Positions 11,006 through 45,536 of a DNA stretch of 64,000 bases are shown here, one piece after another. This DNA is from Selaginella moellendorffii (lineage: Eukaryota > Plantae > Lycopodiophyta): positions 345,700 through 409,699 of the forward strand of contig NW_003314282.1 in the NCBI RefSeq assembly GCF_000143415.4, read 5' to 3'. The notes under the pieces are model-generated. The model was not told where the DNA came from. It did not search any database and saw nothing but the letters and a program-made list of their open reading frames with translations. The translations under genes were made by a program, and so were the position numbers. How positions within the stretch are numbered: position 1 is the stretch's first letter; every line of letters begins with the position of its first letter.

Positions 11006-13193
11006 TCATTCCACATCGTCCGAAAGGACGCGTTTGATCCCGTCGCTACCCTCCTCCTCCGAAGCCGTGGCATTCATCCTGGTGTTCGCCGGGCACCTCT
11101 CGCGCGGATCATCGCTCTCCTTCCTACAGAAGCACTCCGGCCAGGGATTCGTGTAGAACGACTCGGGATTCACCCGGCGGTGAGACCTTCCAAACGTTCC
11201 ACCGCTCATCACGCCTCTCACCATGGCCTCGAAGTTTGCGGCGGCGGCGCCGCCACCACTCTCGCGAGCCATGAAGATCGGTGCCAGAGCCTTCCTGTTG
11301 GGCTGGATGGACGTCCGGAAGCCGTAGTAGAGCCTGTGGCCGAGGAGATTGTTGGCAAAGTTGCTGGGACCGTCGTAAGTTGGCATGAAGATGTCCGAGA
11401 GCAAGCACACCATGTAGTCCACCGCCGGTCCCAGGAGTCCTCTCCCCTCGGCCTGGACAGCTTCCAGCTCCTCCGGAGCGGCCACGGTGGTGCGATTCTC
11501 CAGGTGAGGATACATCTCTCGCAGTGGCTGCATGAATCTCTCGCCTCCAAAGATGTCGCCCGCTGCGAGGTAGAGGCGGGTCGAGTTGTCGAAGCCCATT
11601 GCCTGGAGGATGAGCCCGACTTCTTCCGGTGTCAAGGGACACTTCCCGATTAAGCGCCTCTCGTTGTAGACGAGGCGCTTCTTGGCAAAGTTTTGCTCGC
11701 GGTACTTTCGTAGTATCTCCTGCTCTTCCGGTTTGAATATGGCGAGGCACCTGAGAGAAGCTTGTCGGTGGAGAAAGACTACGAAAGAAGGAAGTACGTA
11801 CCCAGCGAATGCAAGCATGTCCATCTCGAAACGGAGATGGATCGACATGAAGTGGCCTTCAGCGCGGAGCCTGCTCACGATCTGGTTGCTCAGCTGCATC
11901 ACGTCCGGCTTGAAACGCAGTGCGTGGAAGTTTACTCGGCACCTCAACCGCTGGTACTCGGCGTTTGGAACCTCTTCGGCTAGGCGATGGGAAAAGGGAG
12001 TGAGATATATCGCGCCGTGCTGTTTCATCTTAGCCAGCGCTTCGGTCTCGTACCAACTTGGAGGACCATCTCGCGGTGGTGCGATCTACAGCAGACAAGA
12101 GTTACGTTGGTTTGAAAGAACGAGTAACCAACCTGGAAAGCCTTCATCTTTTTCTTCTTCTTGTCGGAGACGTAAGGAAGGGACTCCACAATCTTGACGT
12201 CGTGTCTAAGGGATTTGATAAAGTGTTCTACATCATAAATGCCAGCAAAACCACTGCAACATCAAAAACAACTGTTTGCTCTTTATCATAACCAAGGACG
12301 AGAAAGCAAAAGATATACGGACCTTTTATCGTTCCAAAACGAGTTAGTATCCAACTCCGGCAACACAAGCGTTGCATTCATTATCCTCGCTGCCAAAACT
12401 GCATTACAAATCTGCAATGACACATCGATGAAGCTGGAAATAAAAAGCAAGGAGAATAGAATGTCTCTTACGGCACTACGCTGCTGGTTAAGCCCGCCAT
12501 TGCACCGAACGACGAGATAGCCATTGCTTTTCTTGGGAGGGGCTGCAAGCAAGATAGTCCACTAAGTTACATACAAGAAGAAAAGAATGATATGAGAAAA
12601 AAACTCTACTTACGCGGCCAAAAAGATCTGGGAGCCGAGGAAGGCCTCCAACCAGAAGAAGAAGAGCTCGTCCAAAGAGAATTCACATCAATCTGTCAAA
12701 AGAAAAAAAAAAAAGGAGCAAGAGAGACAAAACGCTTTAAAAACGAGGAGCAAGGAAAGCGCGAGGAATGCTTACATGAGAGTGAACGATGACACCGTCT
12801 TGCCGCAACTGCGAGACCAGCGACACCATGCACAGAAGCAGCACCAGGCCAGAGATGGACAATCGACCAGCAAATCCCTTCATACTGGCAGTCACTTGCT
12901 TCCATTGCCTCTGCCCCCTTCTTCCTAATGCCGACGCTCCACCCGTGAGAGAACGCTCATCATCGTCTTGCGAGTGGCTAGATCCCCTGGACAAGCCAAA
13001 CACAAACCCACGAATCAGGCTCCCGAAACCAGAGAATGCAGCTGCGCTAGAGCTACCACACACAGCGAGGGATCAGATCTGTTGCGCAGCACGAGCACCA
13101 TTCTTTGGTTGCGAGAGAGAGTGTGAGAGAGAGTAGATCTATCCCGCCCCTGTTGCCCTAAGCGAGGAGAGACGAGAGCGCTTACCTACGCAT
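11006..13193 (-). CDS. O-fucosyltransferase-family glycosyltransferase (DUF246/GT106), type II membrane protein; multi-exon
   Basis: TM anchor, [85 protein letters not shown]; 8-nt first exon ATGCGTAG|GTAAG inferred at 13193-13186. Confidence 0.93.
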
Positions 13194-26705: not shown

Positions 26706-27518
26706 CTAGTATTGGTTTAAAAGCTTAATATATTCTGGCTTCAGGCTTTTTATATCTGCTGGTAAATCATTTCCTGTTGCCTTAGCAAATTTCTCCAAAG
26801 CTTGAATAGCCTTGTCTTGAATAGCCTCAATAACTTGCATGTCGAGCTGTTGCGTCTTGAGTTCTTCTAAACCATATCCTCTTCGCAGAATTTCAAGTGG
26901 AGACTCCAGCATGTAGACATGAACCAGTAGCGCATAGACAAGCGCAACACCTGCTCCCAAAAATTGCCATCCTCGTGCAATGGGTTGAGCATACCACATA
27001 CAAACACCATAAAGTGCAGCCCTTACAAGGAGGAGCACGCCCTCGCATCCATACCAATCGTCGAAAGGTACGATTCCTGATGGAGTTGCAAACCCCCAGA
27101 ACTGTATCGCCTGAAAAGGGAGCACCACCCACAAATTCGTGGTCGCTGTGGAACAGATACCGCTGATGCCAGCAACAAGACAGCCATACGCGATTGCCTT
27201 CTTTCGACCCACGGTAGCCAACATTCGCGCTGTTCAAAGTTTCCTCAAGACTACATAAAATAAAACAGGAAAATAAAACTTACCTGAAATGGCACAGGCC
27301 ACCATAACCGCACAGACTCCCACAAACCGTCTGAATTCAGTATCTAGAGGGGGCAGATATGTATTACCCATCCAGATCCCATATGCGGTGTAGCAGTGAC
27401 TAACGAGATTCAGAAAGAACTGGCGCCATATAATCCAGTGACGACCAAGCTTCCAACCCTGGTAGATATCAGCAAGATCATACTCACCCTTTGGGGGGTC
27501 CAACAATCCCTCCTCCAT
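26706..27518 (-). CDS. Half-size MFS (SLC22/OCT N-half-like) membrane protein, 252 aa, 2 exons
   Basis: Exons 27518-27284 and 27229-26706 splice in frame; MEEGLL, GEYDLADIY, GRKK, NLWV, GWQ, LESP, KAIQALEKFAKATGNDLP. Confidence 0.75.
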
Positions 27519-27699
27519 ACCTCTCGCCCGAAATGGCCATTTCAAGACTAGCTTTTTAACATCTTGACCGTTGGATTGGAACGGCCATTATTAGATTCTT
27601 TGTAATGGAAAAAACCACCAACAGAGGATATTTATACCCAACATTAGTATCCATGGTTTGATTATTCTGGTATATGAGCTTATTGCTCGCTCTAAGCTA

Positions 27700-31084: not shown

Positions 31085-32350
31085 CAAATATTCAAATATC
31101 TTCTCGACTAAACCTTGGACCAGGACAGTGTGCTGCCTTCTGAGTCTTGTTGTTTTGTCAAGAACAGTTTTGGGTTTGTTCGTTCGTCCTCGATGGCTGG
31201 AGGATCTCTCCTTTCTCCAACGCTCACAAACAGGCAGATCGATTAATACCATTCCAGTTTTGCTGGCTTGCATCACGGCCGCCAGTAGAGGTTTGATATT
31301 TGGACATGACACTGGAATCTCAAGTACAGAAGACGCTTCAACGCTTAGCAAGTTCTATAAGATCGCCATGGACGATTTTCTCATCAGTTTTTCTATGTCC
31401 GCAAGCACGCTGCCCCCGAGAACAATTACTGTAAGTATGACAACCAGGGTCTCCAGGCATTCAAGTCCTCGCTCTATCTCGCAGCTCTCTTTGCGAGCTT
31501 TGGAGAGTACGTGACGAGCAACAAGGGGCGATGCCCAACAATGCTAATTGGTGGCCTCAGCTTTCTCATTGGAGGGGCTCTCCATGCTGCCGCAGAGAAT
31601 TTGGTGATGCTTACCAAAAGTTCTTATTAGGTAAGCTTGATATATGTTCTTGGTTTGTTTACTAAATATTTGGCAGTCAGTACCACTCTACCTGTCAGAG
31701 ATGGCACCACCAAAACTTCGCGGTGATCTCAACATAATGTTCCAGCAAGCCGTCAACTTTGGGGTCTTGTGTGCCAATCTCATCAATTATGGCACCGCTA
31801 ATCTCCAGCTCTGGGGAAGGAGGCTCTCGCTCGGCCTTGCGGCAGTCCCAGCATCACTCCTCACTTTTTGCGGCCATTTTCCTCTCCGACACTCCAAACA
31901 GAGGCCATCTCGAGCAAGGCAAATCACTCCTCCAGAGCCTCAGCTTGCAATGGCCGTGCTCATCCCATACTGTCAGCAAGTCACAGGCATCAACTACGCT
32001 CTTGTTCTGTTCCAGTCGATTGGGTTCCACACAATGCCTCGCTCTACTCGGGAGTGATCACCGTCATGATCAATGATTTTCAAAGTGGCCACTAGAATTA
32101 TTTTAGCTAGTTCGAGTTCAAGGGGAACGAAGAGCTCAAAGAGATTCGCAGTAGGCGTTCACATGATTTCTTTCGCGTGGTCTTGAGTTGCCTGGTTCCC
32201 AGCGAAGTCTTTTCTCTTGAGATCTGCTGACCAGTGCAGTAAACATGGATGACGCTCTTCGTGCATTTCTTCTTGCCTGAGACGAAGAAAATCCTAATCG
32301 AGGAGATGCGGCAGGAGTGGAGCAAGCACTGGTACCAAGATGATTCCAAG
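31085..32350 (+). pseudogene. Sugar transporter (STP) pseudogene
   Basis: Colinear with 43520-45530 including promoter, with many deletions and frameshifts. Confidence 0.92.
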
Positions 32351-32878: not shown

Positions 32879-34765
32879 ATGGCCTGAGATGAAGCAACGC
32901 GGTTGTTCATTTGCCGACGTTCTCTCATTATAAACTAACAAGATACATGAATTATTCGATTCTTCCACCCGAACGGGCCGTCGCCACCTTCCTCCAAAGC
33001 CCTGACGTTCATGCTGGTATTCGCTGGGCACCCCTCGCCCGAGAAGCACTCCGGCCAGGGATTCGTGAAGACGACTCGGGATTCACCGGGCGGGGAGACG
33101 TCCCCTCTCACCATGGCCTCGAAGTTAGCGTCGCCGCCGCCGCCACCACTCTCGCGAGCCATAAAGATCGGTGCCAGAGCCTTCCTGTTGGGCTGGATGG
33201 ACGCCCGGAAGCCGTAGTAGAGCCTGTGGCCCAGGAGCAAAGTTGCTAAGACCGTCGTAAGTTGGCATGAAGATGTCCGAGAGCAAGCACACCATGTAGT
33301 CCACCGCCGGTCCCAGCCCCCTCGGCCTGAACAGCTTCCAGCCCCTCCGGAGCAGCGACGGTGGTGCGATTCTCTAGGTGAGGATACAGTGGCTGCATGA
33401 ACGTCTTGCCTCGAAAGATGTCGCCCGCTGCGAGGTAGAGGCGCGTCGAGTTGTCGAGGCCCATTGCCTGGAGGATGAGCCTACTTCTTCCGGTGTCAAG
33501 GGACAGTTCCCGATCAAGCGCCTCTCGTTGTAGACGAGGCGCTTCTTGGCAAAGTTTTGCTCGCGGTACTTTCATAGTATCTCCTGTTCTTCCGGTTTGA
33601 AGATGGCGAGGCACCTAAGAGAAGCTTGTCAGTGGAGGAAGAATGCAAAAGTCGAAAGTACGTACCCAGGGAGCATATCCATCTCATATCGGAGGTGGAT
33701 CGACATGAAGTGGCCTTCAGCGCGGAGCCTGCTGCATCACGTCCGGTTTGAAACGAATCTTGACGTCTGCAACATCAAAAAAAACTATTTGCTCTTTATC
33801 ATAACCAGGGACGAGAAAGCAAAAGATAAAAGGACCTTTTATCGTTCCACAGAGAGTATCCTACTTGGGCTTAACCAGCAGCGGAGACATTCTACTTTCC
33901 TTGCTTTTTATTTCCAGCTTCATCAGTGTGGCTATGCAGATTTGCAATGCAGTTTTGGCAGCGAGGATAATGAATGTAATGCTTGTGTTGCCGGCCATTG
34001 TAACGAACGACGAGATCGCCATTGCCTTCCTTGGGAGTGGCTGCAAGATAGTTCACTAAGTTACATAGGAAGAAGAGAAAGATATGAGAAAAACACTCGA
34101 CAATTACTTACGCGGCAAAAAAGATCGGGACGGCCTCCAGCCAGAAGAAGAAGCTGCCAGAAAAAGAGAACAAAAAAAGGAGACAAACACGTATAAACGA
34201 GGAGCAAGGAAATGTTGACGAATGCTTACATGCGAGTGAACGATGAGCCGCAATTGCGAGATGGACAATCGACCAGCAAATCCCTTCCACTTCAATCACA
34301 GACCTCCACTTCCTGTGCCACCAACGCGTGCTGGACGGCTGCCATCGGTAGCCTGGGCGATGCTCAGCATGGCCTCGGGATCCAAATCCAAAAGGGTGCA
34401 CTGGAACGCCCTCGCTACCACTATCACCGGAAGAACTTCGCATGATGCTCGACACGGGGTTAATGTTCTTGCGTGGAGAAAATCGACTCCCGCCTTTAGC
34501 CCGGACGGATCTCAGTTCCTCCCCGGCTCACTGCACTGATTGCCGCAGCTCGACCGGCGTGTCTCATCCTCTTGACTTTGGGCTCGGCCGATCACGAGGC
34601 GGTCCTGCTGTTGCAAATTCCGGATCACAACCAGATCGACCGGGCATTGTCCCAATCACTAGCCAGCCTAGCTCCTGGCCGAGATGGAAGATCTCGTCTT
34701 CCTCGAGCGTGAGATCCATCCTGCTTACCTCGGATTTTCTCAGACCCTGCCGCCATAGCTCCTGG
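32879..34765 (-). pseudogene. Heavily deleted copy of the PPR-start / OFUT / vWA block (copy 4)
   Basis: Colinear fragments of ~10858-15645 (4.8 kb) in 1.9 kb; internal inversion at ~33867-33994. Confidence 0.88.
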
Positions 34766-34949: not shown

Positions 34950-36330
34950 TTATAACTGGATTGCAAATTGTTATTTGTACAGGTGCCCAAATCATAGAAG
35001 AATATCTCAATGAATCTCCTCTCTTTACCATAATACATCTTTAATTATTTCTAATGTTTGAATAAGTCAGGATAATAAGATAAAAAAGGGCTTTACAATC
35101 AAGTGATCACCCTTTTAGCCAATTGGCTTAAGGTGTAAAGGATAAAATCTTAACATTGGCATGAGTGGGTAGAAATATTCATCATGGTGAAGGTTTAGTA
35201 AAACCATGGTGACTGTAAGGTGGTTTATGATTGCAAACTATCATTCCTTGCCAAGGGGAAGATTATTAGGCATCAGGTCAGAGTCATAAATTGCTGGATA
35301 TGTAAATTTTTTCTCACCCTACATTATGAAAATCTTTGTATCATAAATTGCTGGATATATAAATTTTTTCTCACTTATGAAAATCTTTGTATCCAGGGAA
35401 ATTATGAAAGTCTCTTTTTCTTACAACTAATTCTTCATTTCAAACTTGACCATTTGAAATCTCCTCTCACCTTTTTATCTATTCACTGCCACCTTTGACT
35501 CCTCATATCCCTCTACTTCTAAAGTTCATATACTTTTTTCCTCTAGTTTTGGAATTTTCATGATTCTTTTGTGGCTCATAATAATCTCCACAATCATTAA
35601 TGCTACTTATTTCCTCAATAATTGACGCTCTATTAGCAGAATCCCAAACACTTATCTGGGCTTTTTCTTATTCAATCCTTTTTTCCAAATAGCTCCTACT
35701 TTCATCCTTATCATATTTTCTCCTAATTTACAACCTTATTTATACCATAAAGGAATCTGTCTTACTTCATCTCTTCATAAAGAGGGTATTACTTTATTTT
35801 AACCCTACATTGATTTTTTATCTCCACCATGCTAAGAAAATCCTAATAGAAGGATGGAAATATTATATTATATGTTCACCTATTCCTCCTTCTATATTTA
35901 TTTTAATCTCTTGGTCACAAAATTTACATGTTTCCTCTCTTCATCCTTTAACCACTTTTTATCTTTTTTCCTTCATCTTTTAACCATTCTTTCTTTTTTT
36001 TCTTTTTCCTTATCTCTCTTCTTCCTCTCTTTATCCTTTAACCACTCTTTATTTCTCTTCATTTTTTAACCATTCTTTCTTTCTTTCTTTTTCTTTCTCT
36101 CTTCCTCTTCATCCTTTAACCACTCTTTATCTCTCTTCCCTCATCCTTAACCATTCTTTCTTTCTATTTTTTTTCTTTCCTAACCTCACAAGAGGAAGGA
36201 TGTTAAATGCTTAATATATATGATTTTGAAGTTGGGTAAAAATATACTTTGCTCAAGCATATATTATATTTTAAGTAGCCACTAATTAATGGGAATCGAA
36301 CTAATACCCCTGGCTCTAATACCATATGTA
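34950..36330 (-). mobile_element. Decayed LTR-retrotransposon 5' region (PBS + degenerate internal region)
   Basis: ggctctaatacca at ~36312-36324 is the reverse complement of TGGTATTAGAGCC, one mismatch from the tRNA-Met PBS; purine-rich minus-strand repeats at 35940-36170; no intact ORF. Confidence 0.4.
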
Positions 36331-38149
36331 GTGCACCCTACCTTTCTCCTTTTAAGTTAACTAGAAAATTTTAAACCAACTAAAAAAAAGACAATTACTT
36401 AATAAAAAAGCCCTTAATGGTTATTTTATCTCTATATATATATTCCCCAAAGCTACAGTGGTTATTTAAAGTATCTGCATTAGGTTCTTGAAATAATCCC
36501 TACCAATCCTTTATAAAACTACTTTGATATTACTACAAAACACTCTAAATGCCTTATCTTAGTCTGTTATAAATCCTCACACTATATATTCCTTGATTCT
36601 CTTATGAATTAAATGCTAATATAACCCAAATTCAAGCTAAAATCATATGCTGTGATGTATGTTGCCTCTACGTAACTAATATAACAACATTTTCGACAAT
36701 TTTCTTTTGATTTACCAATTCCATTGCCCTACTCACCTTAGGAATTTTGTTTCATAAAAGCAATTTTAGATTTCAAACTCAACCACCTGAGTCACCACTT
36801 TGCATATGAGTCATATAGTATATTTTTATATGATCCCTCAATTGAATCTTCAATTCTTCCATGAAATATTATTTTATGTGCCAATCAATGATAATGGATG
36901 GCTCTAATTGCATTGCAAGTTGACTTAGGGTATTAGCGAAAGTCCAAAATAGTCTCATTGTCCTTCTGAATCCTTGTTATAAACTCATGTAAAAGTCTTT
37001 GCCTATTTAAATTAAGGAACTAATTCCTAAACTTTTACTCAAACCAACTAAGTACAATTTTACATCCCTCTAGATAACCCAAGAATTATTCCTTTAAGGA
37101 ATTTTATTAGATTTCAGCTAGTCTAATGGACATTGCACTTCTAGCTTATAATAGTGTTTTGTTATAAAGGTCACCAACAAATTTTGATTTTTATCTAGTT
37201 TACTATCTCCCTTAAAGTTAGGCAATTTAAACTTGCTAAAGATAATGGCATTTTATTCACATGCAACAAAACCTTTTAAATTTCTAAACATCTTAGGAGG
37301 GTGAATGACTGGTCCTTTGTAAACAAACATTTCAAACATAAAACTATAAGTAGCCATGATATAAAAATCTTTCTTTTAGTGAACATTTTTATATCCAATT
37401 GATTCAGTTTTTTGCGCCCCAACCAAAATAAATACTCCCTTGTTAAGGGGTTTAGAAACAGCCCTCAAGTCCCCTTAACCCCCTTAGTCACAAACTATTT
37501 AATCACTAAGGCAAATATTTCTTTTTTTAATTATATCCTTTCTTCATATGCTTTTGTTTTTTTGACATTCTTATTATTGGAACTTTCCAAATAAATTGAT
37601 TATGATTTTTTGGCCTCCACAATCATTGCATCTACCTTAATAACCAAATTTCAAAAAACCCCCATGATTCTAACCATTTCCACTTCAAAGTACTTTTTAT
37701 TGTAACATTGTAAAATTGTTTCATCTAGAATCCATACCCTTTTCTTCTATTAAGATTTTTACTTTTGTGAATAAAGTAAAATCATTATGTAGTGGCTCCT
37801 CTTGATTGAGGAACTCAATGGGTTATTATTTCTTTACTTGGAACTCTTATTGACTTTATGCTTTTACATTATTATAAAAGCTCGTAATATAATTTGGTAG
37901 AATATTAGCTGGTGACATATGCCAGCTAAGTGAATTGAACAATTTCCCCTTTTTGGATGGTACAAACTACAAGAGTTTACATTCATGATTGAGTTATCAA
38001 GTATATATATTCCCATTTATTTATTCTTTTTATAATTTTCAAAATTTTTTATTTCTCTCATTATCATGTAATGATTAATTGCATATTTCTGATTTATTAC
38101 AATTAATTGATGGATAAGGTGGTTGTTTAGAATTTAAATATGTTTGGCC

Positions 38150-41100
38150 TTTTTTGGGAGCTATTCTACACTCTCCAAGCTCACACAGTGCTTAACAATA
38201 TCAACTATCTAATTTACATTCATTATTTGTTTCTATTTGTATATTCAAACTTTGAAAACAATTGAAATCATATTCTAATTAATGAGACTACATTAAGAAG
38301 TTTTCAAAAAAAATTAATACCATAATTTTTAGTGTTGAAATAAAGGTAGAGCAAGAAATTGAGCAACCCATTTTCTAGGATGTGAAAAATTTTCCTCCCC
38401 CAACCAATCCCTAAGCATGCATAATAAGTAAGGTTTAAATTCTCAATTACTAAATGTTATTGATTAAATGTTATCCTAGAAAGATTTAGGACTTCAAGAG
38501 GAGGTAACTAGATTCCTTTATTTTCTTTCTTTGCTACATAAAATAAATTTCTAAAGTAAGCTATTGGTATTTATTTACTCATACAGCATTTTATTAATTA
38601 TTATATTTTCATCATAATAAAGAGCATATAAACCAATAGCGTCGAGGTTTTAAAACTTACATACATATAAGATTTATTAATTATTTTCTCATCAAATTTT
38701 ATATTGACTCTCTTAAATCCTTTACAATGAATAAATGGAGAATGAAGAATATAAGCTGTTGGTAATGCTAGTATTTATTTAATCATAAATTTTTTCTCTT
38801 TTATTTTATAAATCTCTCATAATGAACAAAAGGAGGATGAACTTATAAGCTTGCCATGATGACACTTAACACTTGAGGATATAAATTTTGACACTCATAT
38901 ACTAATAAAGTAGCCAGTTATTCTAAACATAAAGATTCATATTTAATGTTTTCTTTTGTAAATCCTTTATAATGAGCAAATGGAGAATGCATCTGAGTAG
39001 TAAAAGAATGAATAAAAATGTTATTTATAAATAAATTTATAATAGATTTTATACTTATTATTTATTAAAATTTTATACAAGTGAAAAACAATGCATACTA
39101 ATAATTCAAGATGGTATGTATTGACCTCACACTCATTGAAGAATTATTATTTCTCATTATTATCTATGTCTTATGCATTCACCAATAGAAGCTAAACAAA
39201 ACAAAAAAATCTAGCTAAACATTTTATACAAATAAAAAAATGCAATACACTATTTTTGCATATCTTAAGTGGTTAGCCATGCTTTCAAGTAATATCTTTA
39301 TTATACATTTAAAAACTCTATAACATTAAAATATATTTGGATTTCATTTAGACTTATTCTACCCTTTTCACATTTCACATAATGACAATTTTAGAATGTT
39401 AGTTATCTTGTTTACATCCATTGTTATTTTTTCTCCACACCCTCAAAACAATTGAAGTTATGTTTCAATTGCGTTACAAAGTTTTCAAGAAAAATACTAA
39501 AACCTTAACTTTTATTACTAAGATAAAAACAAAATAAAAAATTGAGTAGCCCCTTCTCCAAAATGTGGAGAACCCTTCTCCCTCACTAAATACCTAGGTA
39601 TATATAGTAATAAAGTTTAAATTTATATTTGCCAAAAGCTACAGTAAATTCAAAAGGATTAATGCTAAAAAGATTTAAAGGTTCAGGAAGAAATAGCTAT
39701 ATTTTTTATTTCTTTTTTTGGCCAAGAAAAATTATTTTTTAAGGTAAACTATTGGCTTTTATTTACTCACAAATTTTCTTAGTCACTCTTCTGTTTGAAA
39801 ATCCTTCACAATAAGTAGTATTAAGAATAATAAAGTTGAAACAATAAAACTTACATAATAGTAAGTTTTATTAATTATTTTATTATGAAGCTTTATATTC
39901 ATTTTTGTAAATCCTTCATAATGAACAAATAAAGAATAAAAAATATAAGTTGTTGGTAATACTAATTTTTATTTAATCACATATTTTTATAATTTTATTT
40001 TTTACATCTTTTATAATGAGTAATGGAGGATGAGCCCTTAAGACAAAGGCTTTAATACTTACATGCTAAAAAAGTAGCTAATTATTTTACTCACAAGGCT
40101 TTATATTTAACTTATTTTTTTTATCTCTTTCATGATGAACAAATGGAGAATACTTTTAAGTAGCAAAAGAATGAATGAAAATGTTATTTGTAAGTTTTAT
40201 ACTCACTGTTGATTGAGATTCTATAGGTGAAAAATAGTCTACGCTAGTATCTCAAAATAGTATATATTGATTTTACCTTCATTGTGCAATTTTTATATCT
40301 TATTATTGTTTATATTTTTTACATTTACAAGTAGGAGTTAAAAAAAATGAAAAGATTAGTTATACTTTTCATATATTATATTTAAAAACCTCCATAACAT
40401 TAAAATATATTTAGATTCATTATGGAGCTATTTTACATTTTCCACAACTGACATAATAATAATTTAAAAATGTTAGATATTTAGGCTGCATTCATTATTG
40501 TTTTTATACTTGTGTCATGCAAACTTTGTAAACTTTGCAAGGAGGTAACTACATTTTTTTATTTCCTTTTTTTATTACAAAAAAATGATTCCGAAGTAAG
40601 TTATTTATTTATAAATTTTTTTATTCACTCTTTTGTTTTGTAAATCCTTCACAATGAGTGATGTTTATATTAGCTTTGAGAGTTATATGTAGTAAGTTTT
40701 GTTAGTTATTTGGTCACAAAACTTTATATCCACTTTCCTAAATCCTTAGTGAAGAATAAAAGTGAATTATATACTAGTAAATTATATTATGTTACAAAAC
40801 TTTATTTTCACTTTTGTAAATTCCTAATGAAGAATAAACAATAAAATTTTTTAAAAATATTATTTTTTAATCATAAAGTTTTAAACTATTTTGTTTTGTA
40901 AATCTTTCATTATAAGCGAGGGGAGGATAAACCCCTAACATTTCAAGACAAAAGACCAAGTAAGAATTTAGTGAACTACAAGAAAACTAAATAAAAATTA
41001 TTTAACAAAATTATTTAGTAAAATTAAATTTTTATCAAAACCATTAAAAACCAAGTGCATTCTCACTAGCACTTATAATCTAATTAAAAATATTCCAAAA

Positions 41101-42150
41101 ACACTTTTAACTTATTTTAAACATTATTAATCACTTCAAAAAAAGAGAAATCCCTAGCCTAACCCTTTTTTATTGTTTCTCTTATTTTGAAGCAGAAATA
41201 AATAATAATAATGAATGCAAATTAGATAGATAGCATTCTAAAATCATCATTATGCAAATTATGGAGAATGTAAGATAACATCAAAAAAAGTCCAAGCATA
41301 TTTAAATGATAGACCACCACCTTGTTGATAAATTCGTTATAATGAACCAAAGATAGTTAATTGATCACTGTATAATAAAGAGAAAATGTATACCAAAATT
41401 TTTGAGAATAAAAAAAAAGAATAAATAAACTGGAATGTATACCTAACATCTCAATCAAATTTGTGAACTCCACTTTTGAAGACATTCTCAACCATGTAGG
41501 GATTGAGAGAATAAAAAAGTTTTTGGCTGAAGGAAATATCTAAATAAAATAATGAATGCAAATTTTATTGCATTCTTACTTATATAAAGAATTTGGCGAA
41601 ATTTTTTACTTTATTTGGCTGCTATTAGTGAATGTAAAAGATTTAGACAATAGTGATAAAAAATAAACATTAAATAAGTGTGAAGTCAATATATACCATC
41701 TTGAAACACTAGTATGTGTCATTCTCCATTTATGAAATGTCAATAAATAATGAATATATAAATTAATATAACTTTACTTACAAATAGTATTTTTTCTCAT
41801 TCTTTTGCTACTCAAAGGCATTCTCCACTTTCCTATCATAAGAAATTTACAAAAAAAAACATTAAATATAAAGTTTTATGAGTAAAATAACTAATATCTA
41901 AATGTTAAAGTCTTTATTATTACGTTCTAGAGGCTTATCCTCCCCTTACTCATCATAAAAATTTATAAAGTAAAATAATGAAAAGTTTTGTGATTAAATA
42001 AAAACTTAACATTACCAATAGTTTATATTCCTTATTCTCCACTTAAATGAGGGGAGGGTTCTCCACATCCTAAATAAAGGATCATTCTGCCTCCATTTCA
42101 ACACTAGAAACTAGGTTTTAGTGTTTCTTTGAAAACTTTTTGATACAAAT
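38150..42150. repeat. AT-rich ~1.1-kb diverged tandem units (~38160, ~39350, ~40425 partial) plus an inverted copy at ~41640-42150
   Basis: Recurrent aaatcctt.a.aatga..aaatggagaat and ctatt.tac; 41678-41720 is the reverse complement of 39090-39132. Confidence 0.7.
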
Positions 42151-42889
42151 TTTAATGCAATAGAAATAAATAAATATTACTTCACAAAATTGCTCAAGGA
42201 TTTTCTATTGCTATGAGTTACAACCAAAATTCTCTAAAAAATTTCAAATCTTACTAAAACCAAATGCAATTTCACTAATACTCTATCTCTTCATTACTCA
42301 CTTGGGGGTTTGGGCCCTTAATCAGGTACATATGCAATTCCTACCCAAAGGTCTCCAAAATTATATTTATTAAAAACTTTTACCAATCAAGAAAAGATGG
42401 CATCCTATTCCTAACTTGCAAGATTTAATTGGTTTGCAACTATCATTTGAATTTAATAGGATTTTTGCTAAAACCAAGGCTAAAAGGCACTTTACCATGT
42501 AGATTCTATTATGTGCATTTCAACAAGAATCTAATGAGCTATGAGTATTGCCAACCATAAGCTATAACCAAAACTCTTCACTAATCTGAACATTTATAAT
42601 CTCCTCACTAAGAATACTCCAAAAACACTTTTAAACATTGTTAAACATTTGTAAATGCTGTTGTCACCCTCTTTTTATTGTAGGCTCTCCAACTGATTTC
42701 ATCTATATCTTTATTGTCCTTGAGTATAGATCACTCCCAAAAAATATCTATGCATCTCTATATCACACCTTAAATGCTATGTCAATCAAAACATGACTTT
42801 TGATTGTTTCCAAAGTGAGGCCCAACCTAACCATTTCTATCGCTATCCTCCTCCTTATATCTCCTACTCCCATGTTGGGTAAAGCATTC

Positions 42890-43395
42890 CATTGGCCGAT
42901 ATCTACAAGGCCTGGAATCTTGGTTGCAACTGGATTATGTTCCTCTGTATGGGTTTTATATGGCTACCATACATTCCCCTCAGCGATCTTCTCTGTAGCG
43001 ATTATGTATATTTTGTTTGGTCGAAAGAAAACGTACACATAACGTGTGTTCCATAATGACCACAAATCAATGGGTGGTGCTTCCGCTGCTATGCTGTGGA
43101 CTTTTCACTCCTTTCCTGGTATGATGGGGTTGGAGTGTTCGCGTTCATCGTGATTTCCATGGGGGTTCTTTTAGTTTGGCCACCATGGCAAGTACAAGCC
43201 CTTGTACTTGTGGGATCAATTTTCTACGCAGGGCTGCTTCATTTCTACATGTTACAGTCTCCACTTGAACTTCTATGGGTGGTTTTCCAGCAGACCTTGA
43301 TGTTGACAAACAGCTTGCTGTGATGCAAGAGAGCGCCATTCAAGCTTTGAGGGAGTTTGCTGAGGCAACAGGGAATGCTTTACCCAAGAATTTAC
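42890..43395 (+). pseudogene. Half-MFS family pseudogene
   Basis: LADIYKAWNLGCNWIM, FGRKKTYT*, TNQWVVLP, FYMLQSPLE, QESAIQALREFAEATGNALPKN with deletions. Confidence 0.8.
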
Positions 43396-43621
43396 TCAAG
43401 AAACGTGCACGATATGCTTAGCTCATAGTTGAGTTGGTTGCAAGTAATCCTTAAGAAATCCATTCTTCCTAGTGAGAATTTGTAGTTTTAAAATATTATG
43501 TGAATTTATATAAAGCTGACAAATATCCTCTTGGTCAAAGTCCACGCATGGCGACGAAAGCTTGGACCAGGACAGTGTGCTGCTTAACACAGTCTTGGGT
43601 TTGTTTGTTCGCTTGTCCTCG

Positions 43622-45536
43622 ATGGCTGGAGGATCTCTTCTCGCTCCATCGCTCGCAAATAGGCAGATCAATTACAAGGGTCGCACTACCATTCCGGTGT
43701 TGCTAGCTTGCATCGCGGCTGCCAGCGGAGGTTTGATATTTGGATATGACATTGGAATCTCAGGTATAGAAGAGGTTTTTACTTATTGCAAGTTCTACAG
43801 ATCTGCTCTCTCTCCCTCTCCCTCTCTGTTTTTTTTTTCTAGGTGGTGTTATTGCCATGGACGATTTTCTCATCAAGTTTTTCCCCACTGTCTATGTCCG
43901 CAAGCACGCTGCCCATGAGAACAATTACTGTAAGTATGACAACCAAGGTCTCCAGGCATTCACATCCTCGCTCTATCTCGCGGCTCTTTTTGCGAGCTTT
44001 GGAGCTTCCTACGTGACGAGCAACAAGGGGCGACGCCCAACAATGCTAATTGGTGGCCTCAGCTTTCTCGTTGGAGCGGCTCTCAATGCTGCCGCAGAGA
44101 ATTTGGCGATGCTTATCATCGGCCGGATGATGCTGGGTGTTGGAGTCGGCTTTGGAAATCAGGCATGAGACTCCCTTTTTGTTTTCATTCTTTTATCTTC
44201 GTCACAAACTTACAAAGGTTTGCATTTTTCTTCGCAGGTAAGCTTGATCTATGTTCTTGGTTTTTTTGGACAGAGCTAAAGTTCTGGTAAAGGAAGATTA
44301 ACCATGCGGTTTTCTCCTCCAGGTAAGACTGCATTGGGATGAAACATTTTAACTTCAAAGGGAACTTCATCATAGAGAACGAAAACAGTCTTTTATTTAT
44401 TTTTTTCTTTTTGTTGCCAGTCAGTACCAGTCTACTTATCAGAGATGGCACCACCAAAACTTCGCGGTGGTCTCAACATAATGTTCCAGCAAGCCGTCAA
44501 CTTTGGGATCTTGTGTGCGAATCTCATCAACTATGGCACTGCTAATCTCCAGCCCTGGGGATGGAGACTTTCGCTCGGCCTTGCGGCAGTCCCAGCATCG
44601 CTCCTCACCCTTGCGGCCATTTTCCTCTCCGACACTCCAAACAGCCTGATTGAGCGAGGCCATCTCGAGCAAGGGAAATCAGTCCTCCAGAAAATCCGAG
44701 GAACTCCAGACGTGGAGGCCGAGTTCCAGGATCTGGTGGAAGCCAGCAGAGTTGCGTCGACGATCAAGGATCCATTTCTTAGCATCTTTCGCCGGAAGAA
44801 CAGGCCCCAGCTCACAATGGCCGTGCTCATTCCATACTTTCAGCAAGTCACAGGCATCAATGTTATAACTTTCTACGCTCCGGTGTTGTTCCAGTCGATC
44901 GGGTTCCACAGCAATGCCTCGCTCTACTCGGCAGTGATCACGGGATTGATGCTGATCATTGGAACTGGAATCTCGATCTTCACGGTTGACAAGTTTGGCC
45001 GGAGAGTTCTCTTTCTCCATGGAGGAATTCTTATGTTTATTGGCCAGGTAAGTCATGATCGATCACAGTACTTACAAATGTTTCCAATGATTTTCAAGGT
45101 TGTCACTGGACTGGTTCTAGCATTCGAGTTCAAGGGGAACGAAGAGCTCTCTCGGGGATTTGCAGTTGTGATTTTGGTGGTGACATGCGTTTACGTGGTT
45201 TCTTTCGCGTGGTCTTGGGGACCTCTGGGATGGCTGGTTCCCAGCGAAGTTTTCGCTCTTGAGACGAGATCTGCTGGTCAATGCATCACCGTCGCAGTAA
45301 ACATGCTCTTCACCTTTGCGGTCGCGCAATCTTTTCTCTCGATGTTTTGCCACTTCAGGTTTGGGATCTTCTTGTTCTTCGCGGGCTGGGTGGTGGTCAT
45401 GACGCTCTTCGTGCATTTCTTCTTGCCCGAGACGAAGAAAGTCCCAATCGAGGAAATGCAGCAAGAGTGGAGCAAGCACTGGTACTGGCGTCGATTTGCT
45501 CAAGAACAAGAAAACCAAGATGATTCCAAGCCGTAG
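43622..45536 (+). CDS. STP: Monosaccharide/H+ symporter (sugar transport protein family); 4 exons
   Basis: [31 protein letters not shown]|[47 protein letters not shown]; intron 2 (44163-44420) begins with GC. Confidence 0.93.

Follow-up and report, generated by a model that had tools for sequence, protein, structure and literature searches.

Two zero-length-exon joins in a short GC-AG intron of a Selaginella moellendorffii sugar transporter gene: a candidate for stepwise splicing in a plant

How is a plant intron of only 258 nucleotides (nt) removed if it opens with a weak GC donor and contains two stronger donors, each directly abutting an acceptor? The question is raised by the second intron (intron 2) of a sugar transporter gene of the STP family in Selaginella moellendorffii, which lies within a 64,000-nt stretch of contig NW_003314282.1 (RefSeq assembly GCF_000143415.4, positions 345,700 to 409,699 of the forward strand). 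We refer to this whole stretch as the window, and give positions in its own numbering. An initial annotation of the window had pointed to two AG|GT 'ratchet points' inside the intron, and had proposed either recursive splicing or a splice-retention switch controlling STP output. Read from its splice motifs, intron 2 is a series of three complete U2-type short-intron units arranged head to tail, with zero exon bases between them, at an old STP intron position. We estimate at roughly 60% the probability that this intron would be removed stepwise, at least in part.

The limits of the intron are set by the protein. The product of the gene is RefSeq XP_024533810.1 (P0121, 'sugar transport protein 7', 508 amino acids (aa)), and its exact mapping permits only 44163-44420 as an intron between GFGNQ and SVPVYLSE. 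Exon 2 ends ...GGAAATCAG at 44162 and is followed by GCATGA, read-through of which gives Ala and then TGA; exon 3 begins TCAGTACCA at 44421, and the end of the intron reads ttgccag|TCAGTA. The initial annotation had placed the intron here, with a CAG|GCATGA donor and an immediate stop on read-through, and the mapping agrees. The GC-AG intron is required by the protein in both haplotypes (exact mapping of P0121 and P0001). It had been suggested that the GC might be a sequencing error; this is excluded, as the separately assembled haplotype B (L001) carries the same CAG|GCATGA.

The host is a plant STP, that is, a sugar porter of the major facilitator superfamily (MFS), as seen from a Sugar_tr domain throughout, its full length and its closeness to solved STPs. 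The full-length protein used for analysis was the database entry P0121, and exons were searched individually. The Pfam domain Sugar_tr (PF00083) was found on exons 2 to 4 (profile positions 28-119, 123-329 and 343-452), and the profile runs continuously across the GC-AG junction, exon 2 closing at 119 and exon 3 opening at 123. Exon 2 matches the solved structures of STP6 and STP10 (E = 2e-39 and about 3e-36, respectively). The Gln of GFGNQ was considered as the sugar-binding Gln177 of STP10, wrongly: that Gln lies on M5 and by position matches Q177 in exon 3. The gene sequence is identical to L002 3001-4915 (L002 being GL377586.1 386321-394235), and a literature search on the gene identifiers of this STP found nothing. 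Between the two haplotype alleles 17 codons differ, 16 of them synonymously and one non-synonymously, which argues that the gene works; on this codon comparison it is a functional gene under purifying selection. Every incompletely spliced form meets an early stop, after 155-167 codons. Since the gene works and such forms stop early, all 258 nt must leave the mRNA, and the weak GC donor must fire.

What, then, lies between this donor and the acceptor at 44420? Donors were scored by their matches to CAG|GTAAGT, out of nine, and pyrimidine tracts were counted over the last 15 positions before each CAG (Table 1). The donor, branch-like motif and tract values of the units equal or exceed those of nine bona fide introns in three S. 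moellendorffii paralogs. Branch-like yTnAy motifs are found 21-25 nt from the unit ends, with the A at 44212 (25 nt), at 44301 (21 nt), and at 44395 and 44399. Both joins, and the division of the intron into three pieces, lie precisely where they had been annotated. The pieces are also, as claimed, of normal local size: mapping of P0121 gives introns of 79, 258 and 51 nt for this gene, and the paralog introns measure 53-114 nt. By sequence logic, removal of each piece would regenerate CAG|GTAAG, as had been pointed out, because exon 2 ends in CAG.

Table 1. Coordinates of the features discussed, in window numbering
Feature	Position	Strand	Characteristics or basis
STP/MST1 gene (sugar porter, 508 aa)	43622..45536	+	exact mapping of P0121 onto the window
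STP gene exons	43622-43763, 43843-44162, 44421-45047, 45099-45536	+	exact mapping of P0121
Intron 2, composite GC-AG, 258 nt, phase 0, between GFGNQ and SVPVYLSE	44163..44420	+	mapping of P0121
Unit 1, 75 nt	44163..44237	+	donor CAG|GCATGA 6/9; CTTAC 44209-44213; tract 12/15 pyrimidines; acceptor CAG ending 44237
Join 1, CAG|GTAAGC, zero-length exon	44235..44243	+	acceptor abuts donor; tttttcttcgCAG|GTAAGC at 44237/44238
Unit 2, 85 nt	44238..44322	+	donor GTAAGC 8/9; TTAAC; tract 12/15; acceptor CAG ending 44322
Join 2, CAG|GTAAGA, zero-length exon	44320..44328	+	acceptor abuts donor; ttttctcctcCAG|GTAAGA at 44322/44323
Unit 3, 98 nt	44323..44420	+	donor GTAAGA 8/9; TTTAT motifs; tract 13/15; acceptor CAG ending 44420
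Upstream GT, GGA|GTCGGC, donor in old JGI models	44145..44150	+	P0122 and P0123, without VGFGNQ
Intron 3, 51 nt, GT-AG	45048..45098	+	weak collinear alignment with unit 1
Decayed tandem STP copy (pseudogene)	31193..32350	+	exon 1 with a stop codon; numerous deletions (10-130 nt); 12.4 kb upstream

The internal donors thus score 8/9 against 6/9 for the GC donor, which also mismatches the consensus at +4 and +6. GC donors are usually otherwise strong in consensus (AG|GCAAGT), an expectation that CAG|GCATGA, at 6/9, does not bear out. Intron 1 of the paralog P0044 (L003 1149-1201, GL377565.1) is a GC-AG intron as well, 53 nt long, and its donor, CAG|GCAAGA, scores 7/9; GC donors therefore recur in the gene family. 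A U12-type intron was considered for intron 2 and rejected, GCATGA being unlike the U12 donor consensus as generally known. A search of Rfam gave no match in intron 2 at E up to 1, and a hosted small RNA was not found there; the folding of the intron was no better than that of shuffles (z = 0.21).

The two-join arrangement exceeds chance. With a join-type site defined as at least 7/10 pyrimidines followed by YAG|GTRAG, the window has five sites when both strands are counted, compared with a shuffle value of 1.14. Intron 2 holds two of them; another, at 27284 (-), is an ordinary exon-end donor. Among 20,000 dinucleotide shuffles of intron 2, one such site arose in 73 and two sites in none. The joins of intron 2 are also the only join-type pair in the window that is spaced 45-150 nt apart.

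Relatives of the gene indicate which state is derived. At the phase-0 position after GFGNQ, each of three paralogs (P0044, P0046 and P0017) carries just one plain GT-AG intron (59, 67 and 84 nt, respectively); introns of the gene family overall range from 51 to 114 nt. Homologous exon-2 fragments from other plants invariably (12/12) read G-F-[GA]-N-Q followed by a Val codon and hence a GT donor. The plain GT-AG introns of the paralogs and the GT donors of the plant fragments together imply that the composite GC-AG state is derived. Orthologs from other Selaginella species were not recognisable among the exon-2 matches, in which the best fragments were 70-74% identical with a GT donor (V codon) next.

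Two further copies carry the joins themselves. In the haplotype B allele (scaffold GL377596.1, L001, protein P0001), intron 2 is 268 nt long and retains the GC donor and both joins despite indels of 9, 21, 33 and 7 nt, which leave units of 66, 64 and 138 nt. A G-to-T change at window position 44362 gives this allele a third, weaker AG|GT, CAAAG|GTAACT, with a poor pyrimidine tract (L001 3719-3730, corresponding to window 44357-44366). It divides unit 3 of haplotype B into 71 and 67 nt, and the alleles differ in the number of possible joins. The second copy is the decayed tandem pseudogene, about 88% identical to the STP gene over 1191 aligned nt. It keeps join 1 as TAG|GTAAGC at 31629-31632, in agreement with the initial annotation (the AG is at 31629-31630), and the region of join 2 is absent. 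Its block 31629-31660 matches 44236-44267 at 94%, so that the first 30 nt of unit 2 are kept. Join 1 is consequently older than the duplication that produced this copy. What is left of intron 2 in the pseudogene is a 46-nt GTAAGC...TTGGCAG piece, which by itself still resembles a short intron.

How might such an intron be removed? Introns at the locus are 50-110 nt long, and splice sites are likely paired over short distances; given such short introns and short-distance pairing, the near-consensus internal donors (8/9) and acceptors would be used at least part-time, all the more as no fold or Rfam family was found in the intron that might mask them. Intron 2 would then leave in two or three consecutive reactions, for which more than one order is possible. 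A 5'-to-3' order would produce the junctions 44162^44238, then 44162^44323, then 44162^44421; a 3'-to-5' order would produce 44322^44421, then 44237^44421, then 44162^44421; and an inside-out order would begin with the excision of unit 2 (44237^44323). Because each join is both acceptor and donor, every intermediate would hold a complete intron and all routes would give the same mRNA. The abutment would also render the strong internal donors harmless: the piece left behind by their use would be a complete intron with its own acceptor. The recursive splicing reading of the initial annotation is thus upheld as to anatomy, with its two zero-length-exon joins, to which the branch-like motif and tract of each unit can be added; the 44162->44238-first order that it had named is just one of several.

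As to origin, the boundary of exon 2 and intron 2 likely gained intron-like units, among them possibly a copy of intron 3. This third intron resembles the 3' half of unit 1 over 28/37 aligned columns (45058-45095 and 44198-44230, respectively; in haplotype B, L001 4430-4467 and 3551-3583), and with G and CATGA at the 5' end all 51 nt of it align collinearly with unit 1. Common to both are G, CATGA and TCG.TCACA..ACTTACAAA.GTTT.C.AT..TTTTC; compared with intron 3, unit 1 is without 5 nt, TAAGT, at the donor and has about 30 extra nt. The local alignment has z = 5.2, a score reached by 5/20,000 shuffles (17/20,000 for the haplotype B pair). On these statistically borderline likenesses, unit 1 may be a copy of intron 3. 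Such a copy, if placed exactly at the CAG|GT boundary, would instantly create a zero-length exon, and the GC donor would be accounted for by the 5-nt gap at that site (GTAAGTCATGA versus GCATGA). Weak similarity was also found between the paralog P0046 intron 2 and units 3 and 2 (174 and 293 of 20,000 shuffles, respectively). A mobile, introner-like origin was discarded, as nothing in the window and loci is matched by the units except low-complexity, T-rich sequence. The full scenario, in which a short plant intron is spliced in several steps via zero-length exons that perhaps arose when intron 3 was copied exactly into the boundary of exon 2 and intron 2, is in our judgement doubtful as a whole. 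If it is true, a single locus would combine recursive splicing of abutting introns in plants with intron definition and the making of such joins when a copied intron lands on a splice junction that is already there.

Several observations weigh against stepwise removal and against this origin. Recursive splicing gives the weak GC donor no relief, as this donor must fire on every route. Approximately 11 events distinguish the haplotypes in intron 2. The joins account for one of them, a C-to-T change in a tract, against an expectation of about 1.7 by our own count; on this comparison, conservation of the joins is a matter of age, not constraint, with no excess over the neutral expectation. This conservation is moreover shallow, consisting of two haplotypes and the ~88%-identical pseudogene. 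Queries of the protein collection with exons 3-4 as one open frame, and with exon 2, returned, for this gene, its four NCBI models and nothing else, the Logan-derived fragments all being at most 74% identical; transcript-derived proteins of the gene were not found in this collection. With regard to origin, the three units are without similarity to one another, and a recent tandem duplication of one unit was rejected on this ground. The likeness between unit 1 and intron 3 was noticed post hoc among 33 comparisons, and in a window-wide scan unrelated places score equally or better (38 at 42601 (-), and 34 at three places).

The absence of excess constraint on the joins between haplotypes speaks for the most serious alternative, namely that intron 2 is an ordinary one-step GC-AG intron in which donor 44163 pairs with acceptor 44420, and the joins are silent relics of growth by duplication or insertion of intron-like sequence. 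RefSeq represents intron 2 as one GC-AG intron in each allele. Introns of the GC-AG type account for about 1.2% of those in plants and are normally used (PMC6310983), and intron 1 of the P0044 paralog is another example within the family. The difficulty for this explanation lies in the internal sites: their donors beat the GC donor by 8/9 to 6/9, the tract and branch-like motif of their acceptors equal those of the real introns of the family, and it is hard to see what would bar the spliceosome from using them. We therefore regard one-step removal as unlikely, though it deserves to be taken seriously.

The early stop has a place in another explanation, that of a regulated unproductive-splicing or retention switch, in which units 2 and 3 would be removed constitutively, removal of unit 1 via the weak GC donor would be limiting, and the 75-nt unit with its TGA would set transporter output. 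The stop after 155-167 codons results whichever part is retained, unit 1 included. The GC donor is weak, and in plants GC-AG sites are used less than GT-AG sites (PMC6310983). In S. moellendorffii, intron retention is the commonest type of alternative splicing, and retained introns average 106 nt (PMC5310277). A weak donor, however, does not by itself make a switch, and intron 2 has no conserved element or structure, as judged from the Rfam search and the folding z of 0.21. The switch put forward in the initial annotation finds no support beyond the early stop in every partly spliced form, and we consider it improbable.

Very improbable indeed is a third explanation, in which the authentic transcript is spliced from a GT 18 nt further upstream (44145) to acceptor 44420 and has no need of the GC donor, as in the Joint Genome Institute (JGI) models EFJ25488.1 and EFJ22410.1 (P0122 and P0123; 502 aa), which were built thus: this donor, GGA|GTCGGC, is a poor one that later RefSeq models abandoned, and its use deletes VGFGNQ, although G-F-[GA]-N-Q is kept by all 12 exon-2 fragments and GFGNQ by the three paralogs up to the intron position, and although the Pfam profile is continuous across the GC-AG junction. 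Given the conservation of VGFGNQ, the 44145 donor is best read as a modelling artefact. It probably persists in UniProt D8RQP1 and D8S048. The locus thus has a bearing on annotation, where older models dodged the GC donor and lost six conserved residues.

Is stepwise removal of abutting introns without precedent? Zero-nucleotide recursive splicing at ratchet points is known from long Drosophila introns (Hatton 1998, Burnette 2005 and Duff 2015, cited in PMC4674806; reviewed in PMC13149111 and PMC5126111). As at those ratchet points, a tract and AG abut GTAAG in intron 2, ligation would regenerate a 5' splice site, serial sites are possible and the mRNA would be unchanged; both joins fit the sequence definition of a ratchet point (PMC13149111). 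Unlike the Drosophila sites, which lie in long introns and are thought to aid their removal, intron 2 is only 258 nt long (268 nt in haplotype B), its units are of normal local size, its first donor is GC and the host is a plant. By analogy with Schizosaccharomyces pombe, great intron length would be typical of the animal cases and not essential. The S. pombe RNA SPNCRNA.445 has a zero-length exon in a 336-nt intron, as detected by spliceosome profiling (bioRxiv 10.1101/226894), and is the closest precedent: as with intron 2, an internal 3' splice site sits directly beside a 5' splice site in a short intron of a short-intron organism, and removal takes out the whole intron. SPNCRNA.445 is, however, a host RNA for a small nucleolar RNA (snoRNA), and its case was demonstrated from RNA ends bound to the spliceosome and is conserved among other Schizosaccharomyces species, whereas intron 2 has a protein-coding host and two joins (three in haplotype B), with no hosted RNA found.

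The nearest plant precedent is the 1-nt exon of Arabidopsis, for which intron definition and sequential removal were proposed (PMC4674806, where the 9-nt exon of potato invertase is also cited). In both of these plant cases two introns surround an exon too small for exon definition, the bases of which stay in the mRNA, whereas intron 2 leaves none. In fungi, the complex introns of Lipomyces are removed in one step or in consecutive steps (PMC7138796). Such complex introns and stwintrons (PMC7138796, PMC5639578) resemble intron 2 in having several U2 units at one position, and duplication of splice elements within an existing intron has been proposed as their origin. These fungal units are nested, however: in a stwintron, an internal intron splits a donor, branch point or acceptor belonging to an external intron, which can function only once the first has been excised, and the order of removal is obligatory. 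The units of intron 2 abut, are complete and have no forced order, and a GT donor at 44163 cannot arise from any GT...AG excision within the intron. Compared with plant GC-AG introns of the U2 type (PMC6310983), intron 2 shares the GC donor, AG acceptor and U2 context, and differs by its mismatches at +4 and +6 and by the two far stronger donors that follow within 75 and 160 nt. How widespread recursive splicing is in plants has been described as unknown (10.1101/588780), and no zero-length exon in a plant was documented in the literature that we searched on recursive and composite splicing. Abutting introns with zero-length exons are known already; what is found here is their occurrence in a plant and in a short intron.

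The small size of the locus makes it a convenient substrate. An intron of 258 nt permits a complete test, as intermediates detected by reverse transcription PCR (RT-PCR) would be 75-183 nt longer than the mature product, and it fits in a minigene. Pairing of splice sites when acceptor and donor overlap, the order in which abutting introns are removed, and the competition of a weak GC donor with stronger downstream donors could all be addressed with it.

A few minor observations concern the surroundings of the two STP copies. A strongly AT-rich block at 36000-42000 (GC content of 0.23-0.30, versus about 0.5 elsewhere) immediately precedes the STP gene and the gene beside it. The open reading frame (ORF) at 26706-27224 (-), which ends ...AIQALEKFAKATGNDLP..., lies within the region 26706-27545 (-). 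When read by eye, the DNA just upstream of the STP gene, at 43200-43422 (+), seems to encode a C-terminus similar to that of this ORF. This resemblance suggests that paralogous genes may lie beside each STP copy (26706-27545 (-) and 43200-43422 (+)). Finally, the composite-looking motif tgcgattctcYAG|GTGAGG occurs twice, at 11494-11509 and 33368-33383 (+), 21.9 kb apart; the pair suggests duplication of a gene or element, and around 33000-33400 the minus strand has a coding appearance.

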